Origin: Macrostomum hystrix
Taxonomy: Eukaryota; Animalia; Platyhelminthes
Length of the DNA stretch: 64,000 bases
Assembly: GCA_950097015.1 (NCBI GenBank)
Contig: CATNEN010000011.1
Location: forward strand, 6,014,001-6,078,000
Direction of reading: 5' to 3'
The notes under the pieces were generated by a model. The model was not told where the DNA came from. It saw only the letters and a list, made by a program, of their open reading frames with translations, and made no database searches. A program made the translations under genes and the position numbers. Of this stretch, positions 6,001 through 61,074 are shown one piece after another; position 1 is the stretch's first letter, and each line of letters begins with the position of its first letter.

Positions 6001-7362
6001 AATGCGTTAGTCGGGCCCACAATGGCCAGATGCTTCTCAGCTGACCATTTCTCCTTGCTGCCCGTCAGCAGCACCGATGCGTCGTGATTGTCGCGCACTT
6101 CGCCGCAGGCGCACCTGCCCGCGTCTTTCTCTTCAAATAGGCGGCACTCCTTGCGACAGAAGTGCCTCTTCATGAACTCCCGAAGGCTGTTCTCAACCGC
6201 TTGTCTATTTCTGTCCATGAGTTCCTGGGGCGGCGGGGTTGGATGTTCAGCTCAGATGCACAAGGCATCCAAAGGCTGCGTACAACTGTTCAGTCCATGG
6301 ACTGTAAAAAGGCCAAACTACAAGCCCCAAAAAATGGATGAACTGAAGCGGTGAGGAATAAGATATCCTGCGCTGAGAATCGAACTCCCGACATCTCAGT
6401 GAGTTATCAAAAGCTCTAAACACTGAGCAGCAAGCATAGCTCATTTTATAAGATCAAATTGATTCAAATTTTCTCAACTGAGTGTACCTCACTAAGATTG
6501 GTTCTCTGCTAAAGGGTGTCGATTCTCTCTCTTGAAATGGAATATTGCTTTCTGTGTGTTCATTTTTTCATGCTCAAGGGGGTCATTTGTCCTCTGCTAA
6601 GCTAAGAAGGAACGTTGTTTTCTGCTAAATGGGATATTAAGTGCCTTCTAAAGGGCAGCCATGGGTATTCTACTAAACGGTGACAATAGTTCTCTGCTAA
6701 AGGAAGGCATTGGTTGCCTGCTGAGGGGCATTGGTTGCCCTGCTGAGGGGCATTGGTTGCCCTGCTGAGGGGCATTGGTTGCCCTGCTGAGGGGCATTGG
6801 TTGCTCTGCTGAGGGGCATTGGTTGCCTGCTGAGGGGCATTGGTTGCCCTGCTGAGGGGCATTGGTTGCCCTGCTGAGGGGCATTGGCTGGTTCTCTGCT
6901 ATATGGCTGAGGGGCATTGGCTCACTATCAAAGGGGCAAAGATTGCTTGCTGGGCGAATATTGGTAGCCTGGGGATGGGCTAAAATTGCTAGTATAAGAT
7001 CTAATCTTGTATGAACTAGATTTTCCACATTTGACCTCGGAAAGAAGCTTAGAAAATGACTAAACAGCGTACTTTGAGTAGGCCGCTAAGATTTTCATTA
7101 CCTCCTGCCTCTTCTGTTGCTTATTGTTGCGCTTGTTGAACCGCGCCTTGGCCAGCTCTTCGGTCGCCTCGGAGTCGGCAAACCCGAAGGCTGGCGTCGG
7201 CCTGCTGGATTCCCGACCAGTCGGCGATCCGGGATAGCCTGACATCGGGCCAGCGAGCTGGCGAATGCCGCTGCTGCTGTTGCTGCGCAGATCGGATCGG
7301 CTCGCGACTCCACCGATGGAGACTGTCAGGTTCTCCATCGGGTGGACACCAATGCGAGACAT
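1..7362 (-). CDS. TRPM: TRPM-family cation channel, N-terminal MHR/SLOG region; gene continues past the left edge
   Basis: Phase-compatible GT-AG exons at about 7362-7102, 6224-5906, 4339-4027, 3633-3445, 2815-2587, 1593-1374, 925-639 and 172 to <1. They give TRPM motifs: ISVIGGAKNF, GLIRAAQTTNAWIITSG, CIGVAPWG, LNANHTHYLLVDDG, IPVVLLIVEGG, TGRAADIIAFA, LDLAILSALLK, LSLTWNRPDIA, FVKLFLRNG. Start codon is uncertain. Confidence 0.92.
195..590. repeat. Intronic minisatellite, 15-bp unit (attatcccattctca)
   Basis: Tandem copies visible in the TRPM intron; explains spurious ORF 190..570. Confidence 0.9.
975..1170. repeat. Intronic minisatellite, about 16-bp unit (tttcggaaatcctcag)
   Basis: About 10-12 degenerate copies in a TRPM intron. 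Confidence 0.85.
1612..1921 (+). mobile_element. tRNA-derived SINE, family A
   Basis: tRNA-like head (gagcggttaacgcg...gagctcgattccg, B-box-like) and a body shared with four other copies in the window. Its AT-rich tail resumes after 2534. Confidence 0.8.
1922..2520 (-). mobile_element. Second tRNA-derived SINE-like element (family B) nested in SINE A
   Basis: The minus strand starts ggggcgagtgggtcagcggctaac...ctagttcgattc (A/B-box-like) and ends in A-rich caaataaaaagagataaagag. It is flanked by the 14-bp direct repeat ccattgcccttgtt (1908-1921 and 2521-2534). Confidence 0.7.
2960..3200. repeat. Degenerate intronic tandem repeat of about 31 bp (gatgggaaaattatccct...)
   Basis: Recurring gatgggaaaattatcc motif at roughly regular spacing in a TRPM intron. 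Confidence 0.6.
3765..4005. repeat. Intronic minisatellite with alternating 11-bp units (ccatagacagt/ccatagacatt)
   Basis: Tandem copies inside TRPM intron 3634-4026. Confidence 0.85.
4345..5840. repeat. Intronic 20-bp minisatellite with two sub-arrays (ctactgtctaacggataatc, then cctctgtctgatagataatc)
   Basis: Roughly 70 tandem units filling TRPM intron 4340-5905. Confidence 0.95.
6705..6920. repeat. Intronic 22-bp minisatellite (gaggggcattggttgccctgct)
   Basis: About 9 copies in the first TRPM intron; explains ORFs 6602..6862 and 6648..7028. Confidence 0.9.
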
Positions 7363-9266: not shown

Positions 9267-12200
9267 ATGCCTGGCAAGAAGTTGCGCTCAAACCGCTTGC
9301 TGTCCGAACTCGCTGACCAGCTCGATCGACAGTTCGAAGGCGAGACCGAGCTTCAGGAACTGGCCGAGTTTCTCAACAGCCGCGACATCCGGGCTGCGGT
9401 GGCCGCCCACGAGACGCTTCGTCGTTTGGAGAAGCAGAAGCGCAAAGCGGCTGCAGCCAGTGGGGTCACCGACAGTAAAAGTGCATTTCCTGAGGCGGCT
9501 CGCACCGACTTCATTCAAACATTCCGCGCCGCTCTTGACAGCCTGGAGTCGGCTGCTGCGGGAACCAACGAGGACGCGTGCGAGCTGTACGACCTTCTGG
9601 CGTCGCCTCGGATGACAATCTTCATCGACGCGCTAGAGGATATCGGACATCGAAACTATGAGGTCTGACTGGGATGCTCTAACATTAGGAATCCCGCAAA
9701 GCCTGTTCTTTTAAAATACAATCACGAAATTCTAGCTGGTGGAGCTTATCTACGTGGACATAGAGAGGCTCCAAATGCATTTTTCAAACGACTCTACCAT
9801 AGACTATGGCAATACTTCGAAGTATATTGATGCTTCAGTCTTTCTAGGACGGTAATGTTGCAGCATTCTCTACGCTTCTGAGCTCGATACCTGTCAACAA
9901 ATGATTATGGAGGGAGGAAGTACCTCCCTTTCAAAGCTAGCAGAGCGGTTAACGCGTCTTGCCTCTCGCACCGAGGTCCCTGAGCTCGAATCCGCGGCGA
10001 GGCCACATTATTTTGGAGTGCAACCGCGGATAGAATACTTGTGGACTTGTCGTGCCATTTGCGCCCTTGAGGGCCAACCTCCTAGGCACAGTGAGATTGT
10101 ACACTGCCTGACGATGAGAAAGTCATGGCAGATGTACACACCTGTGTGCGTGTGTGGTCAGGAGTCAGAAAAATGGGCAGAATTGCCTCCTCGCTGGCTG
10201 CAGGTCTAGTGTCACCTAATGATGCGCCATTGCCCGCAGCCCTCCTGCATGTATTACGAGCTATTATTATGATTTCTTTTACTCAGAGTGCATTTAGACT
10301 CAGCCAATCAAACGGACTCACAAACATCTCACAGGGCGAGCCTCCGCTGCTGGGTCGCATCGCCAGCCGGGACCTGGTCGAGTGCAACGTCGACGAAGCT
10401 GGCCGTCAGGTCGGGCCGATCTCGCGGGAGAATCCGAGCTTTCAGGGCGGCGATATCGCGCTGGGCAGTCTGGCCACCGAGGCCGGCAACCCGCTGCAGT
10501 CGCAGCAGCAGCTCGGTCGCAACTTGACTGGCAGTCAGGAAGACGACCTGGACGAGTTTGGCCGGCCGCAGAAGATGATCGCTTTCAATAAGGTTAGAGA
10601 TTAAATTACTGCTGATTAGCTGTTTCATGTTTTTCTATACATATCGGATGAAAAATGCATTCGCATTAGACATGAATTTTACGTGATAGACAGGAGTGTC
10701 ACCTGTCATGCAGTTAAATAATGGTTTATAATTAATCGCCCAGGTCCCAGGTGAGGACTTAGGTATCACAGTTGGAACTATCGAATGGTACGACGATAAC
10801 ACGGGCCAGAGCGGCCTGGACATTGTCGTGGAGCGAATCATGGCCGGCTCGCGGATTGAGCAGCAGAACACGCTAAAACCTTACGACGTCATCAAGGAGG
10901 TCAACGGCATCCCGATCGACTCGCCGGAGAAGCTGCAGCAGGTGATGAAGAAGGCGAGTGGAAGCATCACCTTGAAGGTGCGGTCGGGTTTCTATGAAAG
11001 CACCAAGCCTGTGCAGGTAAGAGTACCCGAATGCGCTATTCTGCTTATACTAATGAGTTGAAATTATTTAATTGAATTTGTTTACTTTTTCTTTTATTTA
11101 ACAACAGAATATTAGCTTCATCGCTGTGACGAAGGTTAGGATGGGGTCAAAATGTACTTTTGCAGTAATTATTATATATTCTAGTTTATTCCTTATATTA
11201 TCCATATACTCATAGAGATAATGTTTGTGCTATTTAAACAAAAATTATTTAAGCAATCAATATATTCTACCTTTCAGGAAGCTTTTGTAAGTACTTCCGG
11301 TAAAGAGCTCCTACAGAATTTAATTAGCATTATCAATCTGATTCAATTCTCAACTTGATTAGCAACAAAATAACAATATCCTCAAACGCAACTTTTGCAA
11401 TGATTACATTTGCGGTTCTCACTATTTGCAATATTACTAATCAGTAGTTCAGCGCACACATTGACAATTAATTTCAAGTTAACTAAAGTTGCAAGCATCT
11501 TCATTCAGACCTACGTGAAGGCATTGTTCTCCTACGATCCCCAATACGACGGCCTGCTGCCGTGTCGCGAGGCTGGCTTGAAGTTCACGGTTGGCGACAT
11601 CCTGCAGGTGCTGTCCCAGGAGGATCCAAACTGGTGGCAGGCCCGACAGTGGAACAGTCGGGGTCGAGCGGGACTCATTCCATCGCTGACTATGCAGGAG
11701 CGGCGAGCGGCGTTTGTGCAGTCCGCGCCCGACAAGGACGCCATCAATTATAAGGTGAAGCAGCCTACTTCATCCGCTTCGACGTTTCTTCATCCACTTC
11801 GACGTTTCTTTGTCCGCTTCGACGTCTCTTCATCCGCTTCGACGTCTATTCATCTGCTTGGAAGTCTCTTCATCCGCTTCGACGTTTCTTTGTCCGCTTC
11901 GACGTCTCCTCATCCGCTTCGAAGTCTCTTCATCCGCTTCGACGTCTATTCATCTGCTTGGAAGTCTTTTCATCCGCTTCGACGTCTTTTCATCCGCTTC
12001 GACGTTGTTTCTTCATCCGCTTCGACGTTGTTTCTTAATCCGCTTCGATGTTGTTTCTTCATCCGCTTCGACGTTGTTTCTTCATCCGCTTTGACGTCTC
12101 TTCACCCGCTTCGACGTTTCTTCATCCGCTTCGACGTTGTTTCTTCATCCGCTTCGATGTATCTTCACCCGCTTCGACGTTTCTTCATCCGCTTCGACGT

Positions 12201-15761: not shown

Positions 15762-16050
15762 CAAAGGAGGAGGCAATTCTGCACGTTTCGCTGACTCCTG
15801 AGCACACACGCACACAGATAGCGTGCCTACCGTAGCGTGCTTAGCTCAGGCACACACTCACACCGAAGTGTACATCTGCCCTGACTTTCTCATCGTCAGG
15901 CAGTGTACACTCTCATTGTGCCTAGGAGGTAAGTCCTCAAGGGCGCAAATGGCACGACAAGTCCACAAGTCTTCTCTCGGCGGTTGTACCCTAAATGAAT
16001 GTGGCCTCGCCGCGGATTCGAGCTCAAGGACTTTGACGCGAGAGGCAAAT
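15762..16050 (-). mobile_element. tRNA-derived SINE, family A, 5' head partly lost
   Basis: Reverse complement matches the SINE A body (gagctcgaatccgcggcgaggccacattc...gatgagaaagtcagggcagatgtacac...gcagaattgcctcct). Confidence 0.8.
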
Positions 16051-28494: not shown

Positions 28495-31400
28495 ATGCAC
28501 TACGGACAAGCGTACTCACTTGAGATGCCCTCCAGCAGGCGCTGCCAGCCCAGTGGTCTCTGCTACCACATCTACTGCCGCCTGCGCAGTCTGCTGCACA
28601 TGCTCTGCCTGCTCGCCAACCGCTGCTGCAGCCGTCGACGTGTCGCAGACGCTGGCGACGGCGACAGGACGCGAGTCGTCGGAGAGCCGCCGTCCACAGC
28701 CACCACGACCACAACAGCCACCACGACCAACACGACCATCACGACCATCACGCCGACTGGCACTTTATCGGGAAATCTGAGCGGCGGCTGCGTGACGCCA
28801 TTCCGTTTTCCCTCCACGGCCTTCTTTGGCCTGGCATCGGACAAGCTGAACCGCTGGAGCAGCATCCTGAAAGAGGACAAAGCGGACGAGTTTGTCCGCC
28901 TGCTGGAGGACAACCGGCATCAGCTGACTCTGGTGTACGACCATCCGTCCTGCAACTACATCTCCTTCCACCGGCTGACTCACCTGTGCGCCTTCAACTC
29001 GGCGATCAACTGCATGCGCCAGCTGGTGAGTCGCTACGAGACGCCAATCTGGTGCGCCAAGGACACCAACGAGAGCACCGTGTTCCACGCACTGTGCTGG
29101 GGCGCGCACTACCAGAAGCGCCAGGAGACGGACTACATCAGCCTGTACAGAGCCGTCTGTGCCCTGATCAAGACTGAGCGCCTGCGAGAGCTGCTACTGT
29201 CGGAGGATCTCGGCGGCTTTCGGCCCGTTGAGTTGGCCATCAAGCTGCGCTGCTTTCGACTGGCCGTCGAGATCCTGGAGACGCCCGGAGTCTACCAGGA
29301 TTCGAGCCTGCGAGGTAATCTGCAAGTTAAGCGCTACTATTTGCACGGATACTTTCGCTGCGGCACAGGTGTCTGCAGGTCGTTGCGTAATCCGGTTCTG
29401 CTATTGTCGGAACTCAGGTAGGAATCGACTGTCAGGTGAAGATAACTGGTCCGATTCTTCAAGCACAGACTGGCAAGGTAATTCCCCAAAATCTATTTTT
29501 CAGGAAAGCTGACTTCAAAGATTTGCGCAGCAGCAACATCATGAACCATCCGGTCGTCAAGTACCTCATCTCGCAGCTGTGGTACCGAAATGTACTTATC
29601 TGCGTCCTGCTGGCGCTGTTCTGGCTCGCCCTGATAATCATCATGCAGATACCGCTGGAGATGCAGATGCAACAGGTGACAACAGATAGCGACGCCTGCT
29701 TTGGCAAGGAAGCAATCAAGGTGGCATTCTACACCATTGTGGTGCACGACCTAAAAGTCTTGGAGAATGTCAGCGTTCGCGCGGTCGAGAACAAGACAGG
29801 AGGGAGTCAGTGGATGAACGAGTAAGTCTGATATGCATTTTGGTCCTCGTGTTCAGCCACTGATAAATAATTCTACTAGGATAAAAGCCAAGGCGAAGAT
29901 ACTGAAGTATGCCAAATTATGTTACTCTTTCAATAATTGCAGGAGGGCTTTGCGCAATGGCCCACCATTTGGTGACACTAGACCCGCAGCCAGCTAGGAG
30001 GCAATTCTGCCCATTTCGCTGACTCCTGAGCACACACGCACACATATACCGTACGCAGGCGCAGTGTCACACAGGTGTGTACATCTGTAACCCTGACTTT
30101 CTCATCGTCAGGCAGTGTACATTACACTGTGCCTTTGAGGTTGGCCCTCATGGGTGTACATTACACGACAAGCCCCCAAGCCTTCTCTCCGCGGCTGCGC
30201 CCCAAGTGAATGTGGCCTCGCCGCGGAATCGAACTCAGGGACCTTGGCGCGAGAGGCAAACGAGTTAACCGCTCTGCCAATGAACCCCTAAGTTAATCTA
30301 ATATACTAAAAATGAAATGGTTGGTTGGTTGGTTGTAATTGATTTTTTCCCGAACGGCTCAACCGATTTTCACCATTTCTTCACCAAAAGATGCCAAATA
30401 TGGGGACAATTATACACGTATTTTTATTAAGCTTAACTTTATTGCTAAAGGGATTAAATATTCGAAAAACATGATTTTTTCAAAGGTCAAACCATCTTGG
30501 CCTATTGAGAATTTCACTGACAGTCACTGAATTAGAATTGCATCGTCAAATCGCGCAACAACCCCTAGCTGATTGAATTTGAAGCCTGCACTCTGGAGAC
30601 AAATTGGAAATAAATGTACACAACCAACCGCGAGACTGAGTGTACTCTATTTTCTTACTTCATTGTACAAAGCCAGAACTTTCAGAATTCATTTTATAAG
30701 GCTGATTTTTGCACCCACTAACCAACAGTCGGAATAGCCGATGTGTAGGCACTAGGAATAGGTTAGGCTAGGCTAGGGTTCGATTCTGCACTGCGTCAAA
30801 TCATTTAGACTAATTTTCAGCCAGTAGTGATTGAAGAGTATTTTAATTTATTTTTTCATTTCGTAAATAAAATATCATAAATCATAGCAAACCTGAATTT
30901 GAATCATGGCAAAAATAGAGCTTGAATCATGGCTAAACCAGCGTCTGAATCATGGCTAAACCAGAGCTTGAATCATGGCTAAACTGGAGTCTGAATCATG
31001 GCTAAACCAGAGTCTGAATCATGGCTAAACCAGCGTCTGAATCATGGCTAAACCAGAGTCTGAATCATGGCTAAACCAGAGTCTGAATCATGGCTTAACC
31101 AGAGTTTGAATCATGGATAAACCAGAGTCTGAATCATGGCTAAACCAGAGCCTGAATCATGGCTAAACCAGAGTCTGAATCATGGCTAAACCAGCGTCTG
31201 AATCATTTAGACTAATTTTCAGCCAGTAGTGATTGAAGATTATTTTAATTTATTTTTTCATTTCGTAAATAAAATATCATAAATCATAGCAAACCTGAAT
31301 TTGAATCATGGCAAAAATAGAGCTTGAATCATGGCTAAACCAGCGTCTGAATCATGGCTAAACCAGAGCTTGAATCATGGCTAAACTGGAGTCTGAATCA

Positions 31401-34400
31401 TGGCTAAACCATAGTCTGAATCATGGCTAAACCAGCGTCTGAATCATGGCTAAACCAGAGTCTGAATCATGGCTAAAATAGAGTCTGAATCATGGCTAAA
31501 CCAGAGTCTGAATCATGGCTAAACCAGAGCCTGAATCATGGCTAAACCAGAGTCTGAATCATGGCTAAACCAGCGTCTGAATCATGGCTAAACCAGAGTT
31601 TGAATCATGGCTAAACCAGCGTCTGAATCATGGCTAAACCAGAGTTTGAATCATGGCTAAACCAGAGTTTGAATCATGGCTTAACCAGAGTTTGAATCAT
31701 GGCTAAACCAGAGTCTGAATCATGGCTTAACCAGAATTTAAATCATGGCTAAACCAGAGTCTGAATCATGGCTTAACCAGAGTCTGAATCATGGCTAAAC
31801 CAGAGTCTGAATCATGGCTAAACCAGAGTCTGAATCATGGCAAAACTGGAGTCTGAATCATGGCTAAACCATAGTCTGAAGCATGGCTAAAATAGAGTCT
31901 GAATCATGGCTAAACCAGAGTCTGAATCATGGCTAAAATAGAGTCTGAATCATGGCTAAACCAGAGTCTGAATCATGGCTAAACCAGAGTCTGAATCATG
32001 GCTAAACCAGAGCCTGAATCATGGCTAAACCAGAGTCTGAATCATGGCTAAACCAGCGTCTGAATCATTTAGACTAATTTTCAGCCAGTAGTGATTGAAG
32101 ATTATTTTAATTTATTTTTTCATTTCGTAAATAAAATATCATAAATCATAGCAAACCTGAATTTGAATCATGGCAAAAATAGAGCTTGAATCATGGCTAA
32201 ACCAGCGTCTGAATCATGGCTAAACCAGAGCTTGAATCATGGCTAAACTGGAGTCTGAATCATGGCTAAACCATAGTCTGAATCATGGCTAAACCAGCGT
32301 CTGAATCATGGCTAAACCAGAGTCTGAATCATGGCTAAAATAGAGTCTGAATCATGGCTTAACCAGAGTCTGAATCATGGCTAAACCAGAGCCTGAATCA
32401 TGGCTAAACCAGAGTCTGAATCATGGCTAAACCAGCGTCTGAATCATGGCTAAACCAGAGTTTGAATCATGGCTAAACCAGCGTCTGAATCATGGCTAAA
32501 CCAGAGTTTGAATCATGGCTAAACCAGAGTTTGAATCATGGCTTAACCAGAGTTTGAATCATGGCTAAACCAGAGTCTGAATCATGGCTTAACCAGAATT
32601 TAAATCATGGCTAAACCAGAGTCTGAATCATGGCTTAACCAGAGTCTGAATCATGGCTAAACCAGAGTCTGAATCATGGCTAAACCAGAGTCTGAATCAT
32701 GGCAAAACTGGAGTCTGAATCATGGCTAAACCATAGTCTGAAGCATGGCTAAAATAGAGTCTGAATCATGGCTAAACCAGAGTCTGAATCATGGCTAAAC
32801 TAGAGTCTGAATCATGGCTAAACCAGAGTCTGAATCATGGCTAAACTAGAGTCTGAATCATGGCTAAACCAGAGTTTCAATCATGGCTAAACCAGCGTCT
32901 GAATCATGGCTAAACCAGCGTCTGAATCATGGCTAAACCAGCGTCTGAATCATGGCTAAACCATAGTCTGAATCATGGCTAAAATAGAGTCTGAATCATG
33001 GCTAAACCAGAGTCTGAATCATGGCTAAACTAGAGTCTGAATCATGGCTAAACCAGAGTCTGAATCATGGCTAAACTAGAGTCTGAATCATGGCTAAACC
33101 AGAGTCTGAATCATGGCTAAACCAGCGTCTGAATCATGGCTAAACCAGCGTCTGAATCATGGCTAAACCAGAGTCTGAATCATGGCTAAACTGGAGTCTG
33201 AATCATGGCTAAACCAGAGTCTGAATCATGGCTAAACTAGAGTCTGAATCATGGCTAAACCAGCGTCTGAATCATGGCTAAACCAGAGTTTGAATCATGG
33301 CTAAACCAGAGTTTCAATCATGGCTAAACCAGCGTCTGAATCATGGCTAAACCAGCGTCTGAATCATGGCTAAACCAGCGTCTGAATCATGGCTAAACCA
33401 GAGTTTGAATCATGGCTAAACCAGCGTCTGAATCATGGCTAAACCAGAGTTTGAATCATGGCTAAACCAGCGTCTGAATCATGGCTAAACCAGAGCTTGA
33501 ATCATGGCTAAACCAGAGTTTGAATCATGGCTAAACCAGAGTCTGAATCATGGCTAAACCAGAGTCTGAATCATGGCTAAACCAGAGTCTGAATCATGGC
33601 AAAACCAGAGTCTGAATCATGGCTAAACCAGAGTTTGAATCATGGCTAAACCAGGGTCTGAATCATGGCTAAAACAGAGTTTAAATCATGGCAAAACCAG
33701 AGTCTGAATCATGGCTAAACCAGAGTTTGAATCATGGCTAAACCAGAGTTAAAATCAAGGCTAAACCAGAGTTAAAATCATGGCTAAACCAGAGTCTGAA
33801 TCATGGCTAAACCAGAGTCTGAATCATGGCTAAACCAGCGTTTGAATCATGGCAAAATTTTTCTTTTGTCATTGAATTGAATTTTGAGTTTGTTATCTCA
33901 TAACGTCATAATGATATATATTTGTATGATAAATATTTTGCCTAATAATCATTTAATTGTTGTTCTTCTCAATTTTCTACAAAAGAAGCTAATATAAAAA
34001 TTAACTGGGCAACATTGTCAACTGGGCATCATCATCAATAAGGAGTCCTCATCAAATGGGGGATCATTGTCAACTGGGGGATCATTGTCAACTGGGGGAT
34101 CATTGTCAACTGGGTGATCATTGTCAACTGGGGGATCATTGTCAACTGGGGATCATTGTCAACTGGGGGATCATTGTCAACTGTGAGATCATTGTCAACT
34201 GGGGGATCATTGTCAACTGGGGGATCATTGTCAACTGGGGGATCATTGTCAACTGGGGGATCATCATCAACTGGGGGATCATTGTAAACTGGGGGATCAT
34301 TGTCAACTGTGGGATCATTGTCAACTGGGGGATCATTGTCAACAAGGGGATCATTGTGAACTGGGGGATCATTGTCAACTGGGGATCATTGTCAACTGGG

Positions 34401-37400
34401 GGAACATTGTCAACTGGGGGATCATTGTCAACTGGGGGATCATTGTCAACTGGGTGATCATTGTCAACTGGGGGATCATTGTCAACTGAGGGATCATTGT
34501 AAACTGGGGGATCATTGTCAAATGGGTGTTCATTGTCAACTGGGGTATCATTATCAACTGGGGGATCATTGTCAACTTGGGAATGATTGTCAAATGGGTG
34601 TTCATTGTCAACTGGGGGATCATTGTCAACTGGGAGATCATTGTCAACTGGGGGATCATTGTCAACTGGGGGATCATTGTCAACTGGGGTATCATTATCA
34701 ACTGGGGGATCATTGTCAACTTGGGAATGATTGTCAACTGGGGGATCATTGTCAACTGGGGGATCATTGTCAACTGGGGGATCATTGTCAACTGGGTGAT
34801 CATTGTCAACTTGGGGATCATTGTCATCTGAGGGATCATTGTCAACTGGGGTATCATTATCAACTGGGGATCATTGTCAACTGGGGGATCATTGTCAACT
34901 GGGGGATCATTGTCAACTGGGGGATCATTGTCAACTGGGTGATCATTGTCAACTGGGGGATCATTGTCAACTGGGGGATCATGGTCAACTTGGGGATCAT
35001 TGTCAACTGTGAGATCATTGTCAACTGGGTGATCATTGTCAACTGGGGGATCATTGTCAACTGGGGGATCATTGTAAACTGGGGGATCATTGTCAACTGT
35101 GAGATCATTGTCAACTGGGGGATCATTGTCAACTGGGGGATCATTGTCAACTGGGGGATCATTGTCAACTGGGGGATCATCATCAACTGGGGGATCATTG
35201 TCAACTGTGGGATCATTGTCATCTGGGGGATCATTGTCAACAAGGGGATCATTGTGAACTGGGGGATCATTGTCAACTGGGGATCATTGTCAACTGGGGG
35301 TTCATTGTCAACTGGGGGACCATTGTCAACTGGGGGATCATCATCAACTGGGGGATCATTGTCAACTGGGGATCATTGTCAACTGGGGGTTCATTGTCAA
35401 CTGGGGGATCATTGTCAACTGGGGGATCATCATCAACTGGGGGATCATTGTCAACTGGGGGATCATTGTCAACTGGGGGTTTATTTTAGCTTTAAAAAGC
35501 TGTAAATTCAGCTGCTAAACAGTATATACAAGACGAATTAAAAATATTTCTGCTCCCCGAAGGGGGGCAAAACATGCTAGTCCACTATACTAAAAATGAA
35601 ATGCTTGGTTGGTTGGTTGGTTGGTTGGTTGGTTGGTTGTAATTGATTTTCTTCCAAACGGCTCAACCGATTTTCACCATTTCTTCACCAAAAGATGCTA
35701 AATATGGGGACAATTATACACGTATTTTTATTAAGCTTAACTTTATTGCTAAAGGGATTAAATATTCGAAAAACATGATTTTTCAAAGGTCAAACCATCT
35801 TGGCCTATTGAGAATTTTACTCACTGCCACTGAATTAGAATTGCATCGTCAAATTGCGCAACAACCCCTAGCTGATTGAATTTGAAGCCTGCACTCTGGA
35901 GACAAATTGGAAATAAATGTACACAACCAACCGCAAGACTGAGTGTACTCTATTTTCTTACTTCATTGTACAAAGCCAGAACTTTGAGAATTCATTTTAT
36001 AAGGCTGATTTTTGCACCCACTAACCAACAGTCGGAAAAGCCGATGTGTAGGCACTAGGAATAGGTTAGGCTAGGCTAGGGTTCGATTCTGCACTGCATC
36101 AAATCATTTAGACTAATTTTCAGCCAGTAGTGATTGAAGACTATTTTATATTATTTTTTTCATTTCGTAAATAAAATATCATAAATCATAGCACACCGGC
36201 TAAAACAGAGTTTGAATCATGGCTAAACCAGAGTCTGAATCATGGCTAAACCAGAGTCTGAATCATGGCTAAACCAGAGTCTGAATCATGGCTAAACCAG
36301 AGTCTGAATCATGGCTAAACCAGAGTCTGAATCATGGCTAAACCAGAGTCTGAATCATGGCTAAACCAGAGTCTGAATCATGGCTAAACCAGAGTCTGAA
36401 TCAAGGCTAAACCAGAGTCTGGATCATGGCTAAACCAGAGTCTGAATCATGGCTACACCAGAGTCTGAATCATGGCTAAACCAGAGTTTGAATCATGGCT
36501 AAACCAGAGTCTGAATCATGGCTAAACCAGAGTCTGAATCATGGCTAAACCAGAGTTTGAATCATAGCTAAACCAGAGTTTGAATCATAGCTAAACAAGC
36601 GTCTGAATCATGGCAAAACCAGAGTTTGAATCATAGCTAAAACAGAGTTTGAATCATGGCTAAACCAGAGTCTGAATCATGGCTACACCAGAGTCTGAAT
36701 CATGGCTCATAGCTAAACCAGAGTCTGAATCATGGCTAAACCAGAGTCTGAATCATGGCTAAACCAGAGTCTGAATCATGGCTACACCAGAGTCTGAATC
36801 ATGGCTAAACCAGAGTTTAAATCATAGCTAAACCAGCGTCTGAATCATGGCTAAACCAGAGTTTGAATCATGGCTAAACCAGAGTTTGAATCATGGCTAA
36901 ACCAGAGTTTGAATCATGGCAAAACCAGAGTTTGAATCATGGCTAACCCAGCGTTTGAATCATTGCTAAACCAGAACTGGTGGATAATCGTCAACTGGGG
37001 GATCATGGTAAACTGGGGGATAATTGTCAACTGGGGGATCATTGTCAACTGGAGGATCATTGGCAACTGGGGGATAATTGTCAACTGGGGGATAATTGTC
37101 ACGGGGAAACATCACCAAATGCGGGATCATAATCAACTAGGGGATCATTGTCAACTAGGGGATCATGTTCAACTGGGGGAACATTGTCAACTGGGATCAC
37201 CATCAATGGGGGATCATAGTCAACTGAGAGATAATTGTCGACTGGGGGATAATCGTCAACTGGGGGATCATGGTCAACTGGAGGATCATTGTCAACGGGG
37301 GGATAATTGTCAACTGGGGGATAATTGTCAACTGGGGAGTCATCATCAAATGCGGGATCATGGTTAACTGGGGGATAATTGTCAACTGGGGGATCATTGT

Positions 37401-39194
37401 CAACTGGGAGATCATTGTCAATGTCAACTGGGGGATCATTGTCAACTGGGGGTTTATCATCACCCGGAGGATCATTGTGAACTGGGGGGATCATTGTCAA
37501 CTTGTTGATCATCATCAACTGGGGGATCATTGTCAACTGTGGGAACATTGTCAACTGGGGGAACGTTGTCAACTGGAGATTATCATCAATGGGGAGTCAT
37601 CATTAACTGGGGGATCATTGTCAACTGCGTGATCATCATCAATTGGGGGATTATTGTCAACTCGGGGATCATTGTCAGCTGTGGGAACATTGTCAACTGG
37701 GGATCATCATCAATGGGGAGTCATCATTAACTGGGGGATCATTGTCAACTGCGTGATCATCATCAATTGAGGGATTATTGTCAACTGGGGGATCATAATC
37801 AACTGCGTGATCATCATCAATTGGGGGATTATTGTCAACGGGGGGATCATTGTCAACTGGGGGATCATTGTCAACTGAGGGATTATTGTCAACTGGGGGA
37901 TCTTTATCAACTGGGGGATCATTGTCAACTGATCATTGTAGCGTAAAAAGGCTGAAAATGCAGCTGCTAAAAAGTGTATACTGGACGAAATCAAAATATT
38001 TCTGCTCCCCTTCGGGGGGCAAAACTTGCTAGTAACATTATAAAATTGGATAATTTATGGCGAGCTCACAATCGTCCCATAGCGGAAACACCACTGGCGG
38101 TTTCATGACGTTACTCGGCGGTGGTCGAGCTGTGGCCTCCAGTTCAAACCTCCTCGAGGTGTGCAGCCTGTTCTCAGCTATTCGGTACACCTACGTGGCG
38201 GTGAGTGTGTTCCTGGTGCTTTGGCACACACTGACCATCTGCCAGCGAGTCCGGATCAAGCTGCGGATGCGGCGTCACGGGCAGCTGGTGTATAAACGAT
38301 TCCTGAACTCCGTGGAAACCGGATGGATGGACCAGGACTGGCTGTCCTACCTCTGCCGTTTCTGTCTCATACTATTCTCAGTGATTCTGTGCTCAGTTCG
38401 AATCTCGAGCCTGCCGTGTCCGCAGAGTCCTCTGTACTTCTACCTAATTCACTATAGAAGCATTCTCAACAGGGTGAGTTTTGGAGCACTGATGAGAGAC
38501 ATAAACTACGAGTACTCATACTTTGCCCGCTAAAAGCCTAAGAGCGTGTTCTGTCTCGCTCTAATATTTTCAGGACCATATCACAAACATCTTCCTAATC
38601 CTACGCGTAATTTTCCACCTGTGCTACCTGTTTCTGCACATCCTGCTGGTCTATTACCTGGAGATGATACCGCACCTTGGTCCGGTGGTCCACGCTTTCC
38701 GCTGCATGTTCTCCCGGTTCCTGTCTTTCGCGGCCATCTACCTGGTTGTGCTGTGGGTCTTCTCGAGCATCTTCTTTTCCGTCAGCTTCGCCTCGGTGCA
38801 CACGCATCAGGACAGGGAGAAGCTGGAGAGCCTGAGCACCTACTACACACAGCACCTGCGCCAGGTGTACTATGCCTTCACGGTCAGCCTGAACATGGAG
38901 AAGCCGTCAGAACTGGTGACCAAGCGGGATCAGATTGGCATCTCGGAGGCCAGCGTCGTCCACCTCATCTTCGTTCTGGTGTTCGCCGTTCTTGTGCTGA
39001 ACTTCATCATCGCGCTACTGGTCAGCGCAATGAACGAAGTCAACGAGTACAGGGACATCTTCTACAGGATCCGCACCACACGCATGTTTCTGCAGATTGA
39101 CGCCGTCTGGTACCCGGTGCTAGCCAAGCTGTCCGACATCACGGGCTGGAAACTGACGGGTCAGGACACTTACACGACTGTCACCCCGGTGTAA
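28495..39194 (+). CDS. TRPV-like ankyrin + 6TM cation channel, about 740-750 aa
   Basis: Exons 28495/28525-29417, 29504-29821, 38083-38473 and 38574-39194 splice in frame. Ankyrin-like repeats (EDLGGFRPVELAIKLR), pre-S1 (VVKYLISQLW), S4-S5 (YYLEMIPHLGPVVHAF), S6 (LNFIIALLVSAMNEV) and a TRP-helix-like segment (YRDIFYRIRTTRMFLQID). Confidence 0.8.
29935..30290 (-). mobile_element. tRNA-derived SINE, family A, near full length
   Basis: Reverse complement begins tggcagagcggttaactcg...gagttcgattccgcggcgagg; same body as the other copies. Confidence 0.8.
30880..33852. repeat. 23-bp satellite (gaatcatggctaaaccagagtct) with higher-order duplication
   Basis: More than 110 monomers, interrupted twice by a copy of the roughly 100-bp flank (at 31201 and 32063). 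Confidence 0.97.
34006..35480. repeat. 18-bp satellite (tgggggatcattgtcaac)
   Basis: About 80 monomers; explains the LGDHCQ/IVNWGI pseudo-ORFs. Confidence 0.97.
36196..36975. repeat. 23-bp satellite, second array
   Basis: Same monomer as 30880-33852, about 34 copies. Confidence 0.95.
36976..37935. repeat. 18-bp satellite, second and more degenerate array
   Basis: Same monomer as 34006-35480 with more substitutions and indels. Confidence 0.92.
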
Positions 39195-43254: not shown

Positions 43255-43611
43255 GCAGACTTTTGATCACAAACCTCTGCACTAATAGTTGCTTCTGCGT
43301 TGATTGTTTCACATTTCCCAGCTTTTCTTCCTCATTTTCACTGGCTTTGTCTCATGCGCTCTACTCAGTAGTAGTATATCAGCGTGTGCGTTTTCTCTAG
43401 TTCGTGCTAGTACTGCGTTTTCAACATTGCTTATCCCAGTGATCTAGCTCATCTACGTAGCAACATATGCAGTTTTTCATCACGCAATAAAGCCGTTTTA
43501 TCCACTTGCGTCAACGTTTTACGCATTTTTACAATACCAGCTAAATTTTGGACTCGAATCTGCAATTGTTTACTGTCGAAATTTCAAGACAACCTACAAT
43601 TACAGGCGCGG

Positions 43612-44332
43612 GTGGGTTAGAGATGGCTCAGGGTGTTAGAGATGGCTGGGGTGTTCTAGAGATGGCTGAGGGTGTTAGATTGACTGACGGTGTGTTAGAG
43701 ATGGCTGAGGGTGTTATAAGTGACTGACGGTGTGTCAGAGATGGCTGAGGGTGTTAGAGGTGACTGACGGTGTTTTAGAGATGGCTCAGGGTGTTAGATA
43801 TACTTTTGGGTGTTAAAGATGTTTGAAATGGCTTAGGGTGTTAGAGGTGATTGATGGTGTGTTAGAGGTGACTGATGGTGTGTTAGAGGTGACTGATGGT
43901 GTGTTAGAGGTGACTGATGGTGTGTTAGAGGTGACTGATGGTGTGTTAGAGATGGCTGAGGGTGTGTTAGAGGTGACTGATGGTGTGCTAGAGGTGACTG
44001 ATGGTGTGTTAGAGGTGACTGATGGTGTGTTAGAGATGGCTGAGGGTGTGTTAGAGGTGACTGATGGTGTGCTAGAGGTGACTGATGGTGTGCTAGAGGT
44101 GACTGATGGTGTGTTAGAGGTGACTGATGGTGTGTTAGAGATGGCTGAGGGTGTGTTAGAGGTGACTGATGGTGTGTTAGAGGTGACTGATGGTGTGTTA
44201 GAGATGGCTGAGTGTGTGTTAGAGGTGACTGATGGTGTGTTAGAGGTGACTGATGGTGTGTTAGAGGTGACTGATGGTGTGTTAGAGGTGACTGATGGTG
44301 TGTTAGAGATGGCTGAGGGTGTTAAGAGGGCA
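43612..44332. repeat. 21-bp minisatellite (gtgttagaggtgactgatggt)
   Basis: About 33 units between the convergent sHSP and CHORDC1 genes. Confidence 0.93.
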
Positions 44333-45218: not shown

Positions 45219-47230
45219 TCAGACGAGCTCAAGCGATGGCCAATTGGCGGCGTTGGTCTTCTTGAGCAGAATCTCCACTTTTGTGGGACGAATGTTCACA
45301 AACGACTGAGATGGGTCGATTTTCTGCAATGCGGAATCAGGAAATCACTGTGCAAATCTCACCTGTTACTGTCATATGATCTCCTTAGATATAGTAGTAG
45401 TATCTACTTACTACTCTTAAAACTACCCTTAAAACTCTCATTGTCTTCTCAAAATTCCTCTGTATTTTTTTATCCCCTTAGAAATCCTATATGTACTCTC
45501 ATTGTCTACTCGGAAATCTCACCTGTAAATCTCACCTCTCATTGTCCACTCGGAAATCACATGTATACACTCACTGCCTCCTTAGAAAACCCATGTGTAC
45601 ACTCACTGCCTCCTCAGATATCACATGTGTACACTCACTGCCTCCTCAGAAATCACATGTGTACACTCACTGCCTCCTCAGATATCACATGTGTACACTC
45701 ACTGCCTCCTCAGATATCACATGTGTACACTCACTGCCTCCTCAGAAATCACATGTGTACACTCACTGCCTCCTCAGATATCACATCTGTACACTCACTG
45801 CCTCCTCAGAAATCACATGTGTACACTCACTGCCTCCTCAGATATCACATGTGTACACTCACTGCCTCCTCAGATATCACATGTGTACACTCACTGCCTC
45901 CTCAGATATCACATGTGTACACTCACTGCCTCCTCAGAAATCACATGTGTACACTCACTGCCTCCGTAGAAAACCCATGTGTACACTCACTGCCTGCTCA
46001 GAAATCTCACCTGTACTCTCATCATTACCTTTAAAACCTTATCACAGCTCCATAAACAGAACTCCAGCCAGATCCCGAAGCCTACCTATCCCCATGACTC
46101 ACATCGTAAAGCACAAAGTCTCGCTGAAACTGACTTTGTCCAGCAGCGAACAGCAGTTTAACGGAGCAGCACACACGATTGGCTTCCACAGTGCAGTCCT
46201 CCGGTACGCACAATTTGGCGAACACATCGAGCGTGATGTAGCCCGCCTTGCCTTGGTGATGGTCGCAGCGACAGCTCGCCGCTGAGGGACCACCGTTCTC
46301 ATCTCTGGCAGCGTCCGCCTGCTTAGTCCAGCGGTGCTTGCCCTGCTCGCAGCCCTCCTGAGCCATGAAGTTGTCGAATTCCGTCGTCTTCCTCTGACAG
46401 CAACTCCAGTACTTCATGCCCTCGTGAAACACCGGCCCACCTGGATGATAATAGCACACCTGACGATCGGCCTGCGGACCCGTGAAGGTGGCCCGACAGC
46501 CGGAGTTCTTGCAGGCGGTGCCCATGGCAACTCCGCCAAACTCGCTGTCCCGATCGCCAGATTTGTTGGCTGCATTGGAGGCTGCCTTCTCCGCCTCGGC
46601 TTTGAGTCGCTCAGTGGTTTTGTCCAACTCAGCGAGTAACCGAGAATCAACCTTACTTATTAAAAGGTAGGTTTCTTCTTTCAGGTATGGGAACCTTCAG
46701 GTATGGGAACCTTCAGGTATGGGAACCTTCAGGTATGGGAACCTTCAGGTATGGGAACCTTCAGGTATGGGAACCTTCAGGTATGGGAACCTTCAGGTAT
46801 GGAAACCTTCAGGCATGGAAACCTTCAGGCATGGAAACCTTCAGGCATGGAAACCTTCAGGCATGGAAACCTTCAGGTATAATATTTTTACCTGCTTATT
46901 AAGGGCCACTTTCTCTTCATCCACCGGTGGTCGAATCGCGGGCTCAGATGATACGCTGACTGGTTTTCTGACCAGCACTGGCTCATTGTAGATCTCGGCA
47001 GATTTCTCCTGCTTAGGCTGAGGCGGCGGTTTCACGGGATTGTGGGGACCCTTGGCACAGCCGCGGATCTGCAGGAAGGTGGTGAAGTCCACAGAGCTCT
47101 TGTTGCAGCAGGACCATTTCTTGCCGCCATCGTGAAACACCGGGGCGCCTGGATGGAACAGGCAGGAGGTGTCAGTGTTGTTGGCCGGGTCAAATTGCTT
47201 GTCGCAGCCTTTGTTGTAACAGTTGAGCAT
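45219..47230 (-). CDS. CHORDC1: CHORD domain-containing protein 1 (Hsp90 co-chaperone), about 330 aa
   Basis: Exons 47230-46892, 46651-46103 and 45323-45219 in frame. Two CHORD domains (CYNKGC...CLFHPGAPVFHDGGKKWSCC...GC..GPH and CKNSGC...CYYHPGGPVFHEGMKYWSCC) and a CS domain (KIDPSQSFVNIRPTKVEILLKK). Confidence 0.95.
45540..46020. repeat. 30-bp minisatellite in CHORDC1 intron 2 (tgtacactcactgcctcctcagatatcaca)
   Basis: About 15 units; explains the Cys/His-rich pseudo-ORFs 45441-46285. Confidence 0.93.
46682..46879. repeat. 16-bp minisatellite in CHORDC1 intron 1 (gtatgg(g/a)aaccttcag)
   Basis: About 12 units. Confidence 0.93.
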
Positions 47231-50489: not shown

Positions 50490-50893
50490 TAAGATATTAT
50501 TTGCACTTTTTATTAGTATAACAAGCATTTAATCTATAGACGATGCTTTTAAAGCATTTTCTTTCTTGAGTAAGTTTTAATAGAAAAAATATTTTAAGTG
50601 ATCGATTTTTTGCATAAGTAAGATTTATAAAGCTAAAGTAATTAATGTTATTGGGAACGTAATATACTTACTTTAGAACTTAAAGGCATCATTGATTACT
50701 TAAAAGAACTCGCTTGGGACAGTACTTTTTGTGGACGTGCAGATTAAGTTTTAACAGAAATGATACATTTTTTAGCTTCTCGCTACTTTAAGCGGACGAC
50801 ATGTCGATTAAGAAGTCAATCTAGCCAACCGATTATTTAATCGAGGCGCGCTTATCTTGCCCTAGCTGCAGCGATCGATAGAGGCGCCTGAAA

Positions 50894-51363
50894 TCTATAT
50901 ATATAAAAGTGAAAACTCTGTCTGTGTGTGTGTGTGTCTGTCTGTGTGTGTGCAACCTTTTGTCTTTATAGACGCCGAAACCGCTCAACCAAATCGCACC
51001 AAACTTTGCACATACCTAAAACCACCTACGCTGAGTGCAATAGGCTACTCAAATTCCCGAAAAATCATTTCCTTCCTGCTCAAAAGTGCAAAAAACTGCT
51101 CAAAAATCGTCAAAAAATCACTCAATTCGACATATCGTCGCCCCACTTTGTCAGATTTTCTCCAAGTTTGATCCACTTACACTTTACATGTTTTCCAACA
51201 ATGCTGTCAATTTTGAACATCTCTACTCAATCCAGAGCAAAGCTGCATCATCTCAAAGTGAGTCACTTTTTGTTTTCCGAGGACAGCCACCCCAACTCCC
51301 CTCCGCCACTCTGCGGGCCAAATTTTCATCTAACGGCCGCCGGCTAGCCGACACTTCCACTAG
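50894..51363 (+). mobile_element. Short non-autonomous Helitron-like element
   Basis: a|TCTATATATATAAAAGTG 5' end, (tg/tctg)n microsatellite, ccgctcaacc motif, 3' palindrome cggctagccg, then CTAG|t; inserted at an AT dinucleotide. Confidence 0.75.
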
Positions 51364-59150: not shown

Positions 59151-59553
59151 AATGCTGGGACTGTCAATGTGCATTCATTGCTTTGACATTTTTCCCTCTG
59201 CAAAAAACTAATGCTGGGATTGTCAATGTGCATTCATTGCTTTGACATTTTTCCCTCTGCAAAAAACTAATGCTGGGATTGTCAATGTGCATTCATTGCT
59301 TTGACATTTTTCCCTCTGCATAAAACTAATGCTGGGATTGTCAATGTGCATTCATTGCTTTGACATTTTTCCCTCTGCATAAAACTAATGCTGGGATTGT
59401 CAATGTGCATTCATTGCTTTGACATTTTTCCTCTGCATAAAACTAATGCTGGGATTGTCAATGTGCATTCATTGCTTTGACATTTTTCCCTCTGCATAAA
59501 ACTAATGCTGGGATTGTCAATGTGCATTCATTGCTTTGACATTTTCCCTCTGC
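59151..59553. repeat. 59-bp tandem repeat, about 6.8 copies, each an imperfect palindrome
   Basis: aatgctgggattgtcaatgtgcattcattgctttgacatttttccctctgca(a/t)aaaact; period 59 (starts 59151, 59210, 59269). Confidence 0.93.
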
Positions 59554-61074
59554 ATTTGTCAGATAAATTTTTCTTTCACGAACGTGACGCGCCTCATCGT
59601 GGCGTGAAAGTGAACAGTGCGCGTTTCAATCTTTTGCACTGGCCAAGACGTCACTACTAGTTAGTCTAGGTGTTTTACAACCTTCTGTACTGAATATCCA
59701 CGAACCAATCACTTCATATATTTTATTCTATCTATTCACATTCTTTATACCCAGAAATTTGCTGTTATAGTAGACTCCCTCTCACAAAGTTGACCTATTT
59801 TGTCTTGTTTCCGGTACGTAAATCAAGAAATCAAAGCAATGAACGCTACTTTTAGTTTAAGATTTAGTATCATTTGCGATTCAGCTCTCAATCTGCGTGT
59901 TCTCAATATAATTTCCTGCTTTCATTCATTTTTTCCCTATGTTCCGTGGTGCACAACTGCTGGACTGGAGAACAATCGCACTCGGCACCAAAAGATGTAG
60001 TGGCACTTTTAGGCTTAAATACAGGTAAAAGATGCTTTTAATTACTTAAATTTGTGACTTATTTATTGAATTTTATATTCTAGTTCAATTCCCACCCTGC
60101 CAGGAAATGCGAACTGGACTCGACAGTTTAGATTATTCGGAGGCAGCCTTGCAAAAACAGTGGCGAAGCCTGTCTGTCACGAGCAGAAACCGTAGCCGGC
60201 CGTCAGTGTCGGCCACCTTCGCGATGCGCGGTTTCTCAATGTACGACGGAAGATAATTGCATATTATGCACTGTCTGCAGCTACCCATCTAGCCGACTAG
60301 CGGGCCTGCCATCCCACCAATGCAGCGCTGGAATACTGAGTACTGGTTGCTAACTGCAAAGATACATGCTTCTCACCTTAATTTGATATTATTTTGCGCA
60401 TTCTCAAGTCCGTGTACTCTGTACTTACCCCCTGTTGAGCAGTTATTGCAATATGCACATTTTTCTTATTTACGAGTAGCTAGTAAATATACAAATTGTA
60501 CTTCGTCTTACTGCTTGCTAATAAATAAGTAGCTTACGAAATGCGCCCGATACCATCCCGTATAAAGCCAGTCTTAAATGGCGCATATTTTGTTACACCT
60601 ACTGTGAGAAGCCTACTATGAAAGTGGTTGATAGTATATAACGACGTGTTATTCTTTGGAAATTATATGCTTAACATATCGCCATTCCAGCATTAAAATA
60701 ATTTTGTGTACAATTTGTTACTTAATAAAAAATTAATCAATTTTCGATATGTACAGCAAGCAAACCGATGCCTTAAGTACCCAAGTTCAGCCGACTGTAC
60801 TTTTGAAAAAACAAGAAAGTGTTTCGTGTTTAAGATTTTAACAGTAACGGCATTGAGGTCGATTGCTGGTAATGTACTGTACGTATCGAGTACAATCGTA
60901 ACAAGTAGCTCTACATGTACCTCAATCTCAGCAAAAATTAGATTAATTGGATGTCAGTATAGAAGTGGATTTCTCATCTCAATCTGATACGAATTTAACG
61001 CCAAAAGCCCCATTGTCAGAACTCTGTTTCCTGAAGTGCAAGTGTAAATTAATTGTCATGATAGTCGAATTTAA

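Follow-up and report, generated by a model that had tools for sequence, protein, structure and literature searches.

How does an intron of a TRP-type channel gene in the flatworm Macrostomum hystrix come to be filled almost entirely by two satellite-rich units of the same build, lying head to tail? The intron lies in a stretch of 64,000 nucleotides from assembly GCA_950097015.1 (contig CATNEN010000011.1, positions 6,014,001 to 6,078,000 of the forward strand), here called the window, and an original prediction, made from the letters of the window alone, had described the units as Helitron-like elements. We conclude that window positions 30297-38032 very probably hold two non-autonomous copies of a single canonical (HLE1) Helitron family that were inserted independently and are joined head to tail in sense orientation within the intron. 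Throughout, contigs are labelled C1, C2, C7, C8, C29, C30 and C33, fetched loci of the family carry L-numbers, and G000 denotes the assembly.

Tandem Repeats Finder (TRF) and direct reading confirmed that both units have the layout that had been predicted: a TC start, a (TTGG)n microsatellite, an arm, an array of 23-bp repeats, an array of 18-bp repeats, and a 3' end with a hairpin and CTAG (Table 1). The direct join of ctag to tccactatac is present at 35580/35581, where the CTAG of unit 1 abuts the TCCACTATAC of unit 2. An A precedes the start of unit 1 (TCTAATATAC, 30297) and a T follows the CTAG of unit 2 (38032). The arms, said to be nearly identical, agree at 95% of alignment columns and at 97.0% over a 538-bp core. 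The 3' ends are 87% identical; in each a hairpin (G+C stem of 8 bp, loop of 3 nt) stands 7 nt ahead of CTAG. Array sizes differ strongly between the units, as the TRF coordinates bear out. Two features had been missed. The 23-mer array of unit 1 is interrupted twice by 88-bp copies of the arm tail (31194-31282 and 32056-32144), and on the feature map each of its three blocks is preceded by such an 88-bp stretch. The second is the spacer between the arrays of unit 1, which is also found in L026, L033, L041-L043, L053 and L056.

A genome search with the arm and the 3' end, a check proposed with the original prediction, covered 220 Mb in 42 contigs and returned hundreds of copies that keep the TC and CTAG boundaries. 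The 584-bp arm query gave at least 672 first-look candidates genome-wide and the 100-bp 3'-end query at least 586, including 22 that are 100% identical; the 3' end of unit 1 has at least 21 other genomic copies at 100% identity. The exact 5' terminus pattern matched 692 times and the exact 3' terminus (CTAG) pattern 502 times, each with 0 matches for its reversed control, and termini that recur by the hundred against none in the controls are not due to chance. Across 60 fetched loci, similarity breaks off precisely at the TC and CTAG ends, with unrelated sequence on either side; sampled copies all start with TCCACTATAC, TCTAATATAC or TCTACTATAC. The proposed Helitron ends, TC and hairpin-CTAG, are thus precise in hundreds of dispersed copies. 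A T follows 495 of the 502 3' termini (98.6%), and (TTGG)n or (CTTG)n begins 24 nt inside the 5' end. In a related subfamily the hairpin is kept with a different sequence (GCTACCC/GGGTAGC). Arms that are 100% identical occur at separate loci with different flanks, and the family is recently active. Its standing as a canonical Helitron is supported by every Helitron hallmark that could be tested.

Coding partners were found as well. Helitron_like_N occurs at 67 places genome-wide, and in one group a 293-aa piece of Rep open reading frame (ORF) lies 2.8-4.7 kb downstream of a family 5' terminus on the same strand. The two coding copies that were read, on C29 and C1, share the family's arm and 3' hairpin-CTAG, and so provide the RepHel partner with matching ends that the original prediction had asked about. 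Their order is arm, short 23-mer array, a weak OTU-like ORF (E 0.14), Helitron_like_N (E 8e-45), PIF1, Pif1_2B and UvrD_C; 22/44-mer and 31-mer arrays follow the helicase, and the family 3' hairpin-CTAG closes the element. They are 96.8% identical over 6.4 kb, and the 18-mer is absent from the C1 copy. The breaks between ORF pieces are the same in both copies, which suggests that they are introns. Between two Rep ORF pieces lies a short inverted 23-mer array (L074:4527-4612; reverse-complement coordinates 6070-6178 in the C29 copy), which is probably intronic and may bear on the origin of the 23-mer. The C1 copy also has an internal 3' end at L074:7796-7862 (G000:C1:10171296-10171362) whose terminus lacks the final AG. 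Downstream of it come 6.6 kb of 22/44-mer and 31-mer arrays and then an intact 3' end with the same upstream 150 bp, an arrangement that looks like read-through past a damaged terminator.

In the published classification, HLE1 elements have TC and hairpin-CTRR ends and insert between A and T, and HLE2 elements have inverted repeats of 12-16 nt, insert between T and T, and are marked by DUF6570; OTU is present in both groups (PMC11417382, HELIANO). All 18 genome-wide matches to DUF6570 lie at other Rep/helicase families and none at that of the family studied here, and no endonuclease (Exo_endo_phos) domain was found in the family's coding copies. A comparison of the 5' terminus with the 3' end for a subterminal inverted match gave at best 8-9 of 10 nt, no better than shuffles. 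The 3' end of a coding copy does hold a perfect 9-nt inverted match, shorter than the HLE2 norm (12-16 nt). The other Rep/helicase families of the genome are just 44-70% identical in the Rep domain. Several of these have open frames of 1,400-2,100 aa, some with DUF6570 (HLE2 type), and some have members standing as same-strand pairs 5.8-12.7 kb apart.

Empty sites were found where an element sits within another repeat, by comparison with element-free paralogs of 85-93% identity. At C33:2206529-2210267 the joined flanks are collinear with four such paralogs, with an exact 3' boundary and no duplicated target; a TCCA stutter adds 3-4 bases before the 5' end. Two independent copies, L082 (G000:C1:13446191-13446400) and L026, have a TCCA stutter directly ahead of the 5' terminus. 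Because it recurs at another copy it is probably element-derived, and the host site of the C33 element would then read A/T. In L082 an aborted copy of the 5' terminus, 20 nt long, stands ahead of the stutter. At C1:25002003-25006498 the joined flanks are again collinear with four paralogs and free of target duplication, and their length equals that of the paralogs under A/T insertion and is one base longer under T/T. The two sites thus agree with the prediction that target-site duplications are lacking, and insertion is best read, from these alignments, as occurring between A and T. Two further candidates were rejected. At L017, where an element lies within a 19-25-bp host array, the downstream neighbour proved to be a family member and the host array never resumes; for the element at C1:26481384, the sequence beyond the 3' end matched window 50893-51077, which is the 5' end of a related family. 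Flank searches for two more elements met one local tandem repeat or unique sequence, and no empty site.

Head-to-tail joining is a habit of the family: 339 of the 692 5' termini stand directly after GCTAG. The exact CTAG/TC junctions are compatible with a circular intermediate without proving one, and we infer that the family transposes by a rolling-circle route. Three kinds of junction can be told apart. Some neighbours are identical (L054/L055 and L056/L057, both 100%; a 14.75-kb three-unit block repeated on C1), and these point to local or rolling-circle amplification. Elsewhere, long head-to-tail arrays of 335-bp mini-Helitrons stand immediately upstream of full-length members (C7:10001545-10007466; also in L003, L005, L006, L015 and L042). 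Each mini-unit combines the family 5' terminus, (CTTG)n and about 175 bp resembling the arm with a hairpin (GCTACCC/GGGTAGC) and CTAG of its own, and such an array is in effect a satellite with a whole element as its monomer. In the third kind unlike units are joined, and the window pair is an example.

The pair very probably formed by two separate insertions, since each unit has closer relatives elsewhere, the 3' ends are of differing types, the spacer is present in one unit only, and at C2:1684166 another partner stands upstream of the unit 2 lineage. In its arm, unit 1 is nearest to L002 (99.1%) and unit 2 to L028 (99.4%), much closer than the 97.0% between the two neighbours. These same facts speak against a local origin, in which a rolling-circle concatemer or a duplication by unequal crossing-over was followed by divergence; the 3' ends are only 87% alike. 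A local origin does draw support from the identical neighbours and the repeated block just described, and tandem copies are an expected by-product of rolling-circle replication, according to PMC9248874, which cites Pritham and Feschotte 2007; for this pair we hold it to be rather unlikely. It is less probable still that transposition ran through the first 3' terminator and moved the units together as a pre-formed dimer. Helitrons are known to read through weak terminators, and the C1 coding copy, with its defective internal 3' end, further 6.6 kb and second 3' end, could be counted as a precedent. Against it, no other sampled junction brings together a 3' end of the unit 1 type and the 5' end and microsatellite of the unit 2 type, and the nearest relatives of each unit have other partners or none.

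As to how separate insertions would come to abut so exactly, the identical, youngest 3' end is shared by 22 copies, 7 of which adjoin the 5' end of older, diverse elements, and one family copy is placed 4-5 nt upstream of the 5' end of a related family; both favour insertion at the 5' boundary of resident copies. For the window, the most likely route, to which something close to an even chance may be given, is that unit 2 was resident first and the younger unit 1 then entered precisely at its 5' boundary, where the host A and the first T of the element would recreate the A/T target. The longer arrays of identical units elsewhere would reflect local or rolling-circle amplification. A broader proposal is that the family targets itself, preferring resident 5' boundaries because A/T is recreated there beside a sequence that the transposase recognises, so that mixed head-to-tail arrays, made of unlike units that each bear satellites, are built stepwise. 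We regard this as possible and put it forward tentatively. If true, self-targeting would turn a dispersed transposon into higher-order, satellite-like arrays without concatemers or unequal crossing-over.

It should also be considered whether the units are canonical Helitrons, or mobile elements at all. A non-mobile, segmentally duplicated stretch of satellite-rich intron would explain the local tandem layout and nothing more; faced with coding partners, paralogous empty sites and hundreds of dispersed copies that have exact ends in common but differ in their flanks, it has next to no probability. Assignment to Helentron/Helitron2 (HLE2), as HINE- or DINE-1-like non-autonomous elements, has more in its favour and is nonetheless highly improbable. 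The microsatellite inside the 5' end, the central tandem repeats and the 3' stem-loop fit the HINE description (PMC7492417), a 9-10-nt complement of the 5' terminus precedes the hairpin at 45-55 nt from the 3' end, and the weak OTU-like ORF and the C33 empty site can be accommodated. However, the termini are of the TC and hairpin-CTAG kind, shuffled sequence yields inverted matches just as good, the C1:25002003 site needs an extra base under T/T, OTU is not diagnostic since both groups have it (PMC11417382), and the partner lacks DUF6570 and endonuclease although DUF6570 is readily found at the genome's other Rep/helicase families. We file the family as canonical Helitron (HLE1) on these sequence features, with non-autonomous copies that are HINE/DINE-1-like in layout.

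Several observations weigh against the account given here. The 5' microsatellite, central repeats and weak 9-10-nt inverted match do recall Helentron-type elements, and the Rep/helicase region of the putative autonomous copies is split into 6-8 ORF pieces. Just 48% of non-junction 5' termini (168 of 353) are preceded by A. Both empty sites are paralogous, at 85-93% identity, and none is orthologous; the C33 site, with its T run and 3-4 extra bases, is compatible with A/T or T/T, and the host T after the C1:25002003-25006498 element is A in four of four paralogs. Finally, the proposed order of insertion leans on indirect age proxies.

Table 1. Features of the two units, their host intron, their coding relatives and other parts of the window (window positions unless a contig is named).
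Feature	Position	Strand	Source
Unit 1, non-autonomous Helitron, subfamily with spacer, 5,284 bp	30297-35580	+	
Unit 1 5' terminus (TCTAATATAC...), (TTGG)4 at 30320-30336, and arm	30297-30880	+	
Unit 1 23-mer array, three blocks	30880-33857	+	TRF, feature map
Spacer of 194 bp between the unit 1 arrays, absent from unit 2	33858-34051	+	
Unit 1 18-mer array, about 80 copies, 90% matches	34052-35479	+	TRF
Unit 1 3' end: hairpin 35551-35569, CTAG 35577-35580	35481-35580	+	
Unit 2, non-autonomous Helitron, spacerless subfamily, 2,452 bp	35581-38032	+	
Unit 2 5' terminus (TCCACTATAC...), (TTGG)8.8 at 35605-35639, and arm	35581-36197	+	
Unit 2 23-mer array, about 34 copies	36198-36975	+	TRF
Unit 2 18-mer array, about 53 copies, 76% matches, more degenerate	36975-37931	+	TRF
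Unit 2 3' end: hairpin 38003-38021, CTAG 38029-38032, then host T	37935-38032	+	
Intron of TRP-type channel gene (GTAAGT ... TAG), 8,261 bp	29822-38082	+	Splice inferred, frame kept
Host-gene ORFs upstream of the intron units	28495-29421; 29436-29825	+	
Host-gene ORFs downstream of the intron units	38057-38533; 38664-39194	+	
SINE-like repeat with A/B-box-like head, 7 bp upstream of unit 1	29950-30289	-	
Coding copies read	C29:5620001-5630811; C1:10163501-10178100 (L074)		
Histone H4 ORF, intact, 103 aa	25075-25386	+	
5' end of a related Helitron-like family	50895-51100	+	
82-bp satellite, at least 36 copies, 97% matches, continuing past the window end	61060-64000		
21-bp array	43611-44329		
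32-bp array	45549-46021		
16-bp array	46680-46880		
59-bp array	59151-59555		

The original prediction held that one vehicle disperses both satellites, and sampling upheld this: 30 of 30 sampled arms run directly into a 23-mer array, all 30 sampled 3' ends have an 18-mer array just upstream, and 8 of 9 arrays checked on C1 lie beside matching termini. Taken together, the 60 sampled copies all keep one order, with the 5' arm first, then the 23-mer and the 18-mer array, and the 3' end last. That check took the first arrays listed, four of the 23-mer and five of the 18-mer. Three of the four 23-mer sites lie between paired termini, and the fourth is a lone exact monomer that has a 3' terminus 1.5 kb downstream and no exact 5' terminus among those listed close by; four of the five 18-mer arrays lie immediately before a 3' terminus. 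The remaining one (C1:6278117-6280872 and beyond), which is very homogeneous and at least 2.7 kb long and has no exact terminus listed nearby, could be a satellite that escaped from an element or a copy with mutated ends. Spacer-bearing and spacerless forms each recur in several copies. L002, the nearest relative of unit 1, has the same block structure with a first block of equal size and later blocks that differ, which argues that the arrays were inherited through transposition and changed length afterwards. The satellites would accordingly behave as cargo, copied to a new site at each transposition and then shifting in length locally.

Exact counts across the genome came to 8,147 23-mers and 3,226 18-mer dimers, against 46 and 13 in the window's two units, so that several hundred element copies suffice to explain the totals. 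As a rough extrapolation from the window's exact-monomer share, the satellites amount to about 0.7 Mb and 0.6 Mb, or about 0.6% of the assembly. The original prediction had suggested that the family could be a source of the genome's satellite load; by this estimate the contribution is modest. The cargo also varies. A second element at L017+L077 (G000:C8:1856446-1864534) has the same arm (95%) with a 17-mer satellite rich in ATCTCCCATCGCC and a 3' end of the mini-unit type, which indicates that the repeat cargo is interchangeable within the family. In all, its range takes in the 23-mer with the 18-mer, the 17-mer, the 31-mer and 22/44-mer of coding copies, and tandem 335-bp mini-units. The longest array seen belongs to an element within a SINE (short interspersed nuclear element) at L038+L076 (G000:C29:1036489-1044588), whose 23-mer array runs for at least 5.7 kb with the arm unreached.

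In the host gene, GTAAGT at 29822 and AG at 38081-38082 preserve the reading frame when 29821 is joined to 38083. The two units make up 7,736 bp of the 8,261-bp intron (93.6%), and 50 bp separate the end of unit 2 from the exon, matching the predicted figures of about 93% and about 50 bp. The host ORFs have a TRP-type look. Searched exon by exon, they gave a Pfam match to Ion_trans (E 6e-6) in the last downstream piece, and their sole solved-structure matches were to the insect TRPV Nanchung, weak at E 0.05; the N-terminal exon piece had no match in the solved-structure search. The predicted label 'TRPV-like' is tentative, its support being this Ion_trans match and the weak Nanchung matches. 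An old paralog lies at C30:3702386-3705696, with exons 65-84% identical and 607 bp between exon matches that are spaced 8,543 bp apart in the window gene. Further copies of the SINE-like repeat next to unit 1 lie at window 1618-1896, 9940-10215 and 15767-16049 and in several fetched loci; ARAGORN called no tRNA in the copy at 29950-30289.

Elsewhere in the window, the related Helitron-like family at 50895-51100 starts with TC after A, has an A-rich terminus resembling that of the studied family, and continues with a (TGTC/TG)n microsatellite and then arm-like sequence. Elsewhere in the genome, a member of the studied family is inserted 4-5 nt ahead of another copy of this related family.

The family offers a clean case for studying the passage from transposon to satellite, with about 500-700 exact-ended copies, coding partners, recent activity and interchangeable repeat cargo. 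As half of its 5' ends lie in exact junctions, the formation of tandem Helitrons can be examined in it. It also inflates introns, to 8.3 kb in the host gene against at most about 0.6 kb between the equivalent exon matches of the old paralog. For annotation, the family merits a library entry of its own, as it would otherwise be split into 'satellite' and 'unknown repeat'.

Helitron-borne tandem repeats in Drosophila and oysters had been invoked as precedents. They do exist in both, but both are of Helentron type, and the family studied here is a canonical Helitron. In Drosophila, the very abundant DINE-1 and DINE-TR1 are rolling-circle elements of the non-autonomous kind, and their central tandem repeats can grow into satellites; DINE-1 is placed among the Helentrons (HLE2), and the repeat unit of DINE-TR1 is about 150 bp, as opposed to 23 bp and 18 bp in the Macrostomum family. 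In the oyster, satellite-like arrays lie in non-autonomous Helentrons, with one cluster per element and exceptionally two, one following the other (PMC7492417). Cg_HINE of the Pacific oyster (Vojvoda Zeljko et al. 2020, PMC7492417) resembles our family in being a non-autonomous rolling-circle element with a 5' microsatellite, central arrays and a 3' palindrome, and in having short arrays scattered across the genome. It differs in being Helentron-type with subterminal inverted repeats, whereas the Macrostomum family has TC and hairpin-CTAG ends and a partner without DUF6570 or endonuclease. In the Macrostomum family, moreover, two arrays per element are the rule and half of the 5' ends lie in head-to-tail junctions.

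Canonical Helitrons have been tied to tandem repeats in Meloidogyne, Rhynchospora, wheat and rice (PMC13404089). The centromeric arrays of mitotic Meloidogyne and the TCR1/Tyba system of Rhynchospora (PMC13404089) are alike in their canonical TC and CTAG ends, 3' hairpin, autonomous and non-autonomous members, and in the coupling of Helitrons to tandem repeats that they are proposed to spread. There, however, the repeats are centromeric and form large clusters, whereas the Macrostomum arrays are not known to be linked to centromeres, lie inside the element termini and are mostly 0.2-3 kb long (at least 5.7 kb in one copy). Our literature search found no description of Helitrons in Macrostomum, only incidental co-mentions, those checked concerning other organisms. 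Tandem Helitrons are known from bat Helibats and from Helitron-1_DPe of Drosophila pseudoobscura, and PMC9248874, citing Pritham and Feschotte 2007, describes the same exact 3'-to-5' head-to-tail joins and reads them as a rolling-circle footprint. Many Macrostomum junctions differ in joining unlike units (of different subfamilies, with different cargo, or with 335-bp mini-units), which points to insertion beside resident copies as well as to concatemer formation. Satellite-carrying and tandem Helitrons have thus already been described elsewhere, and the Macrostomum family is a further clear example of both.

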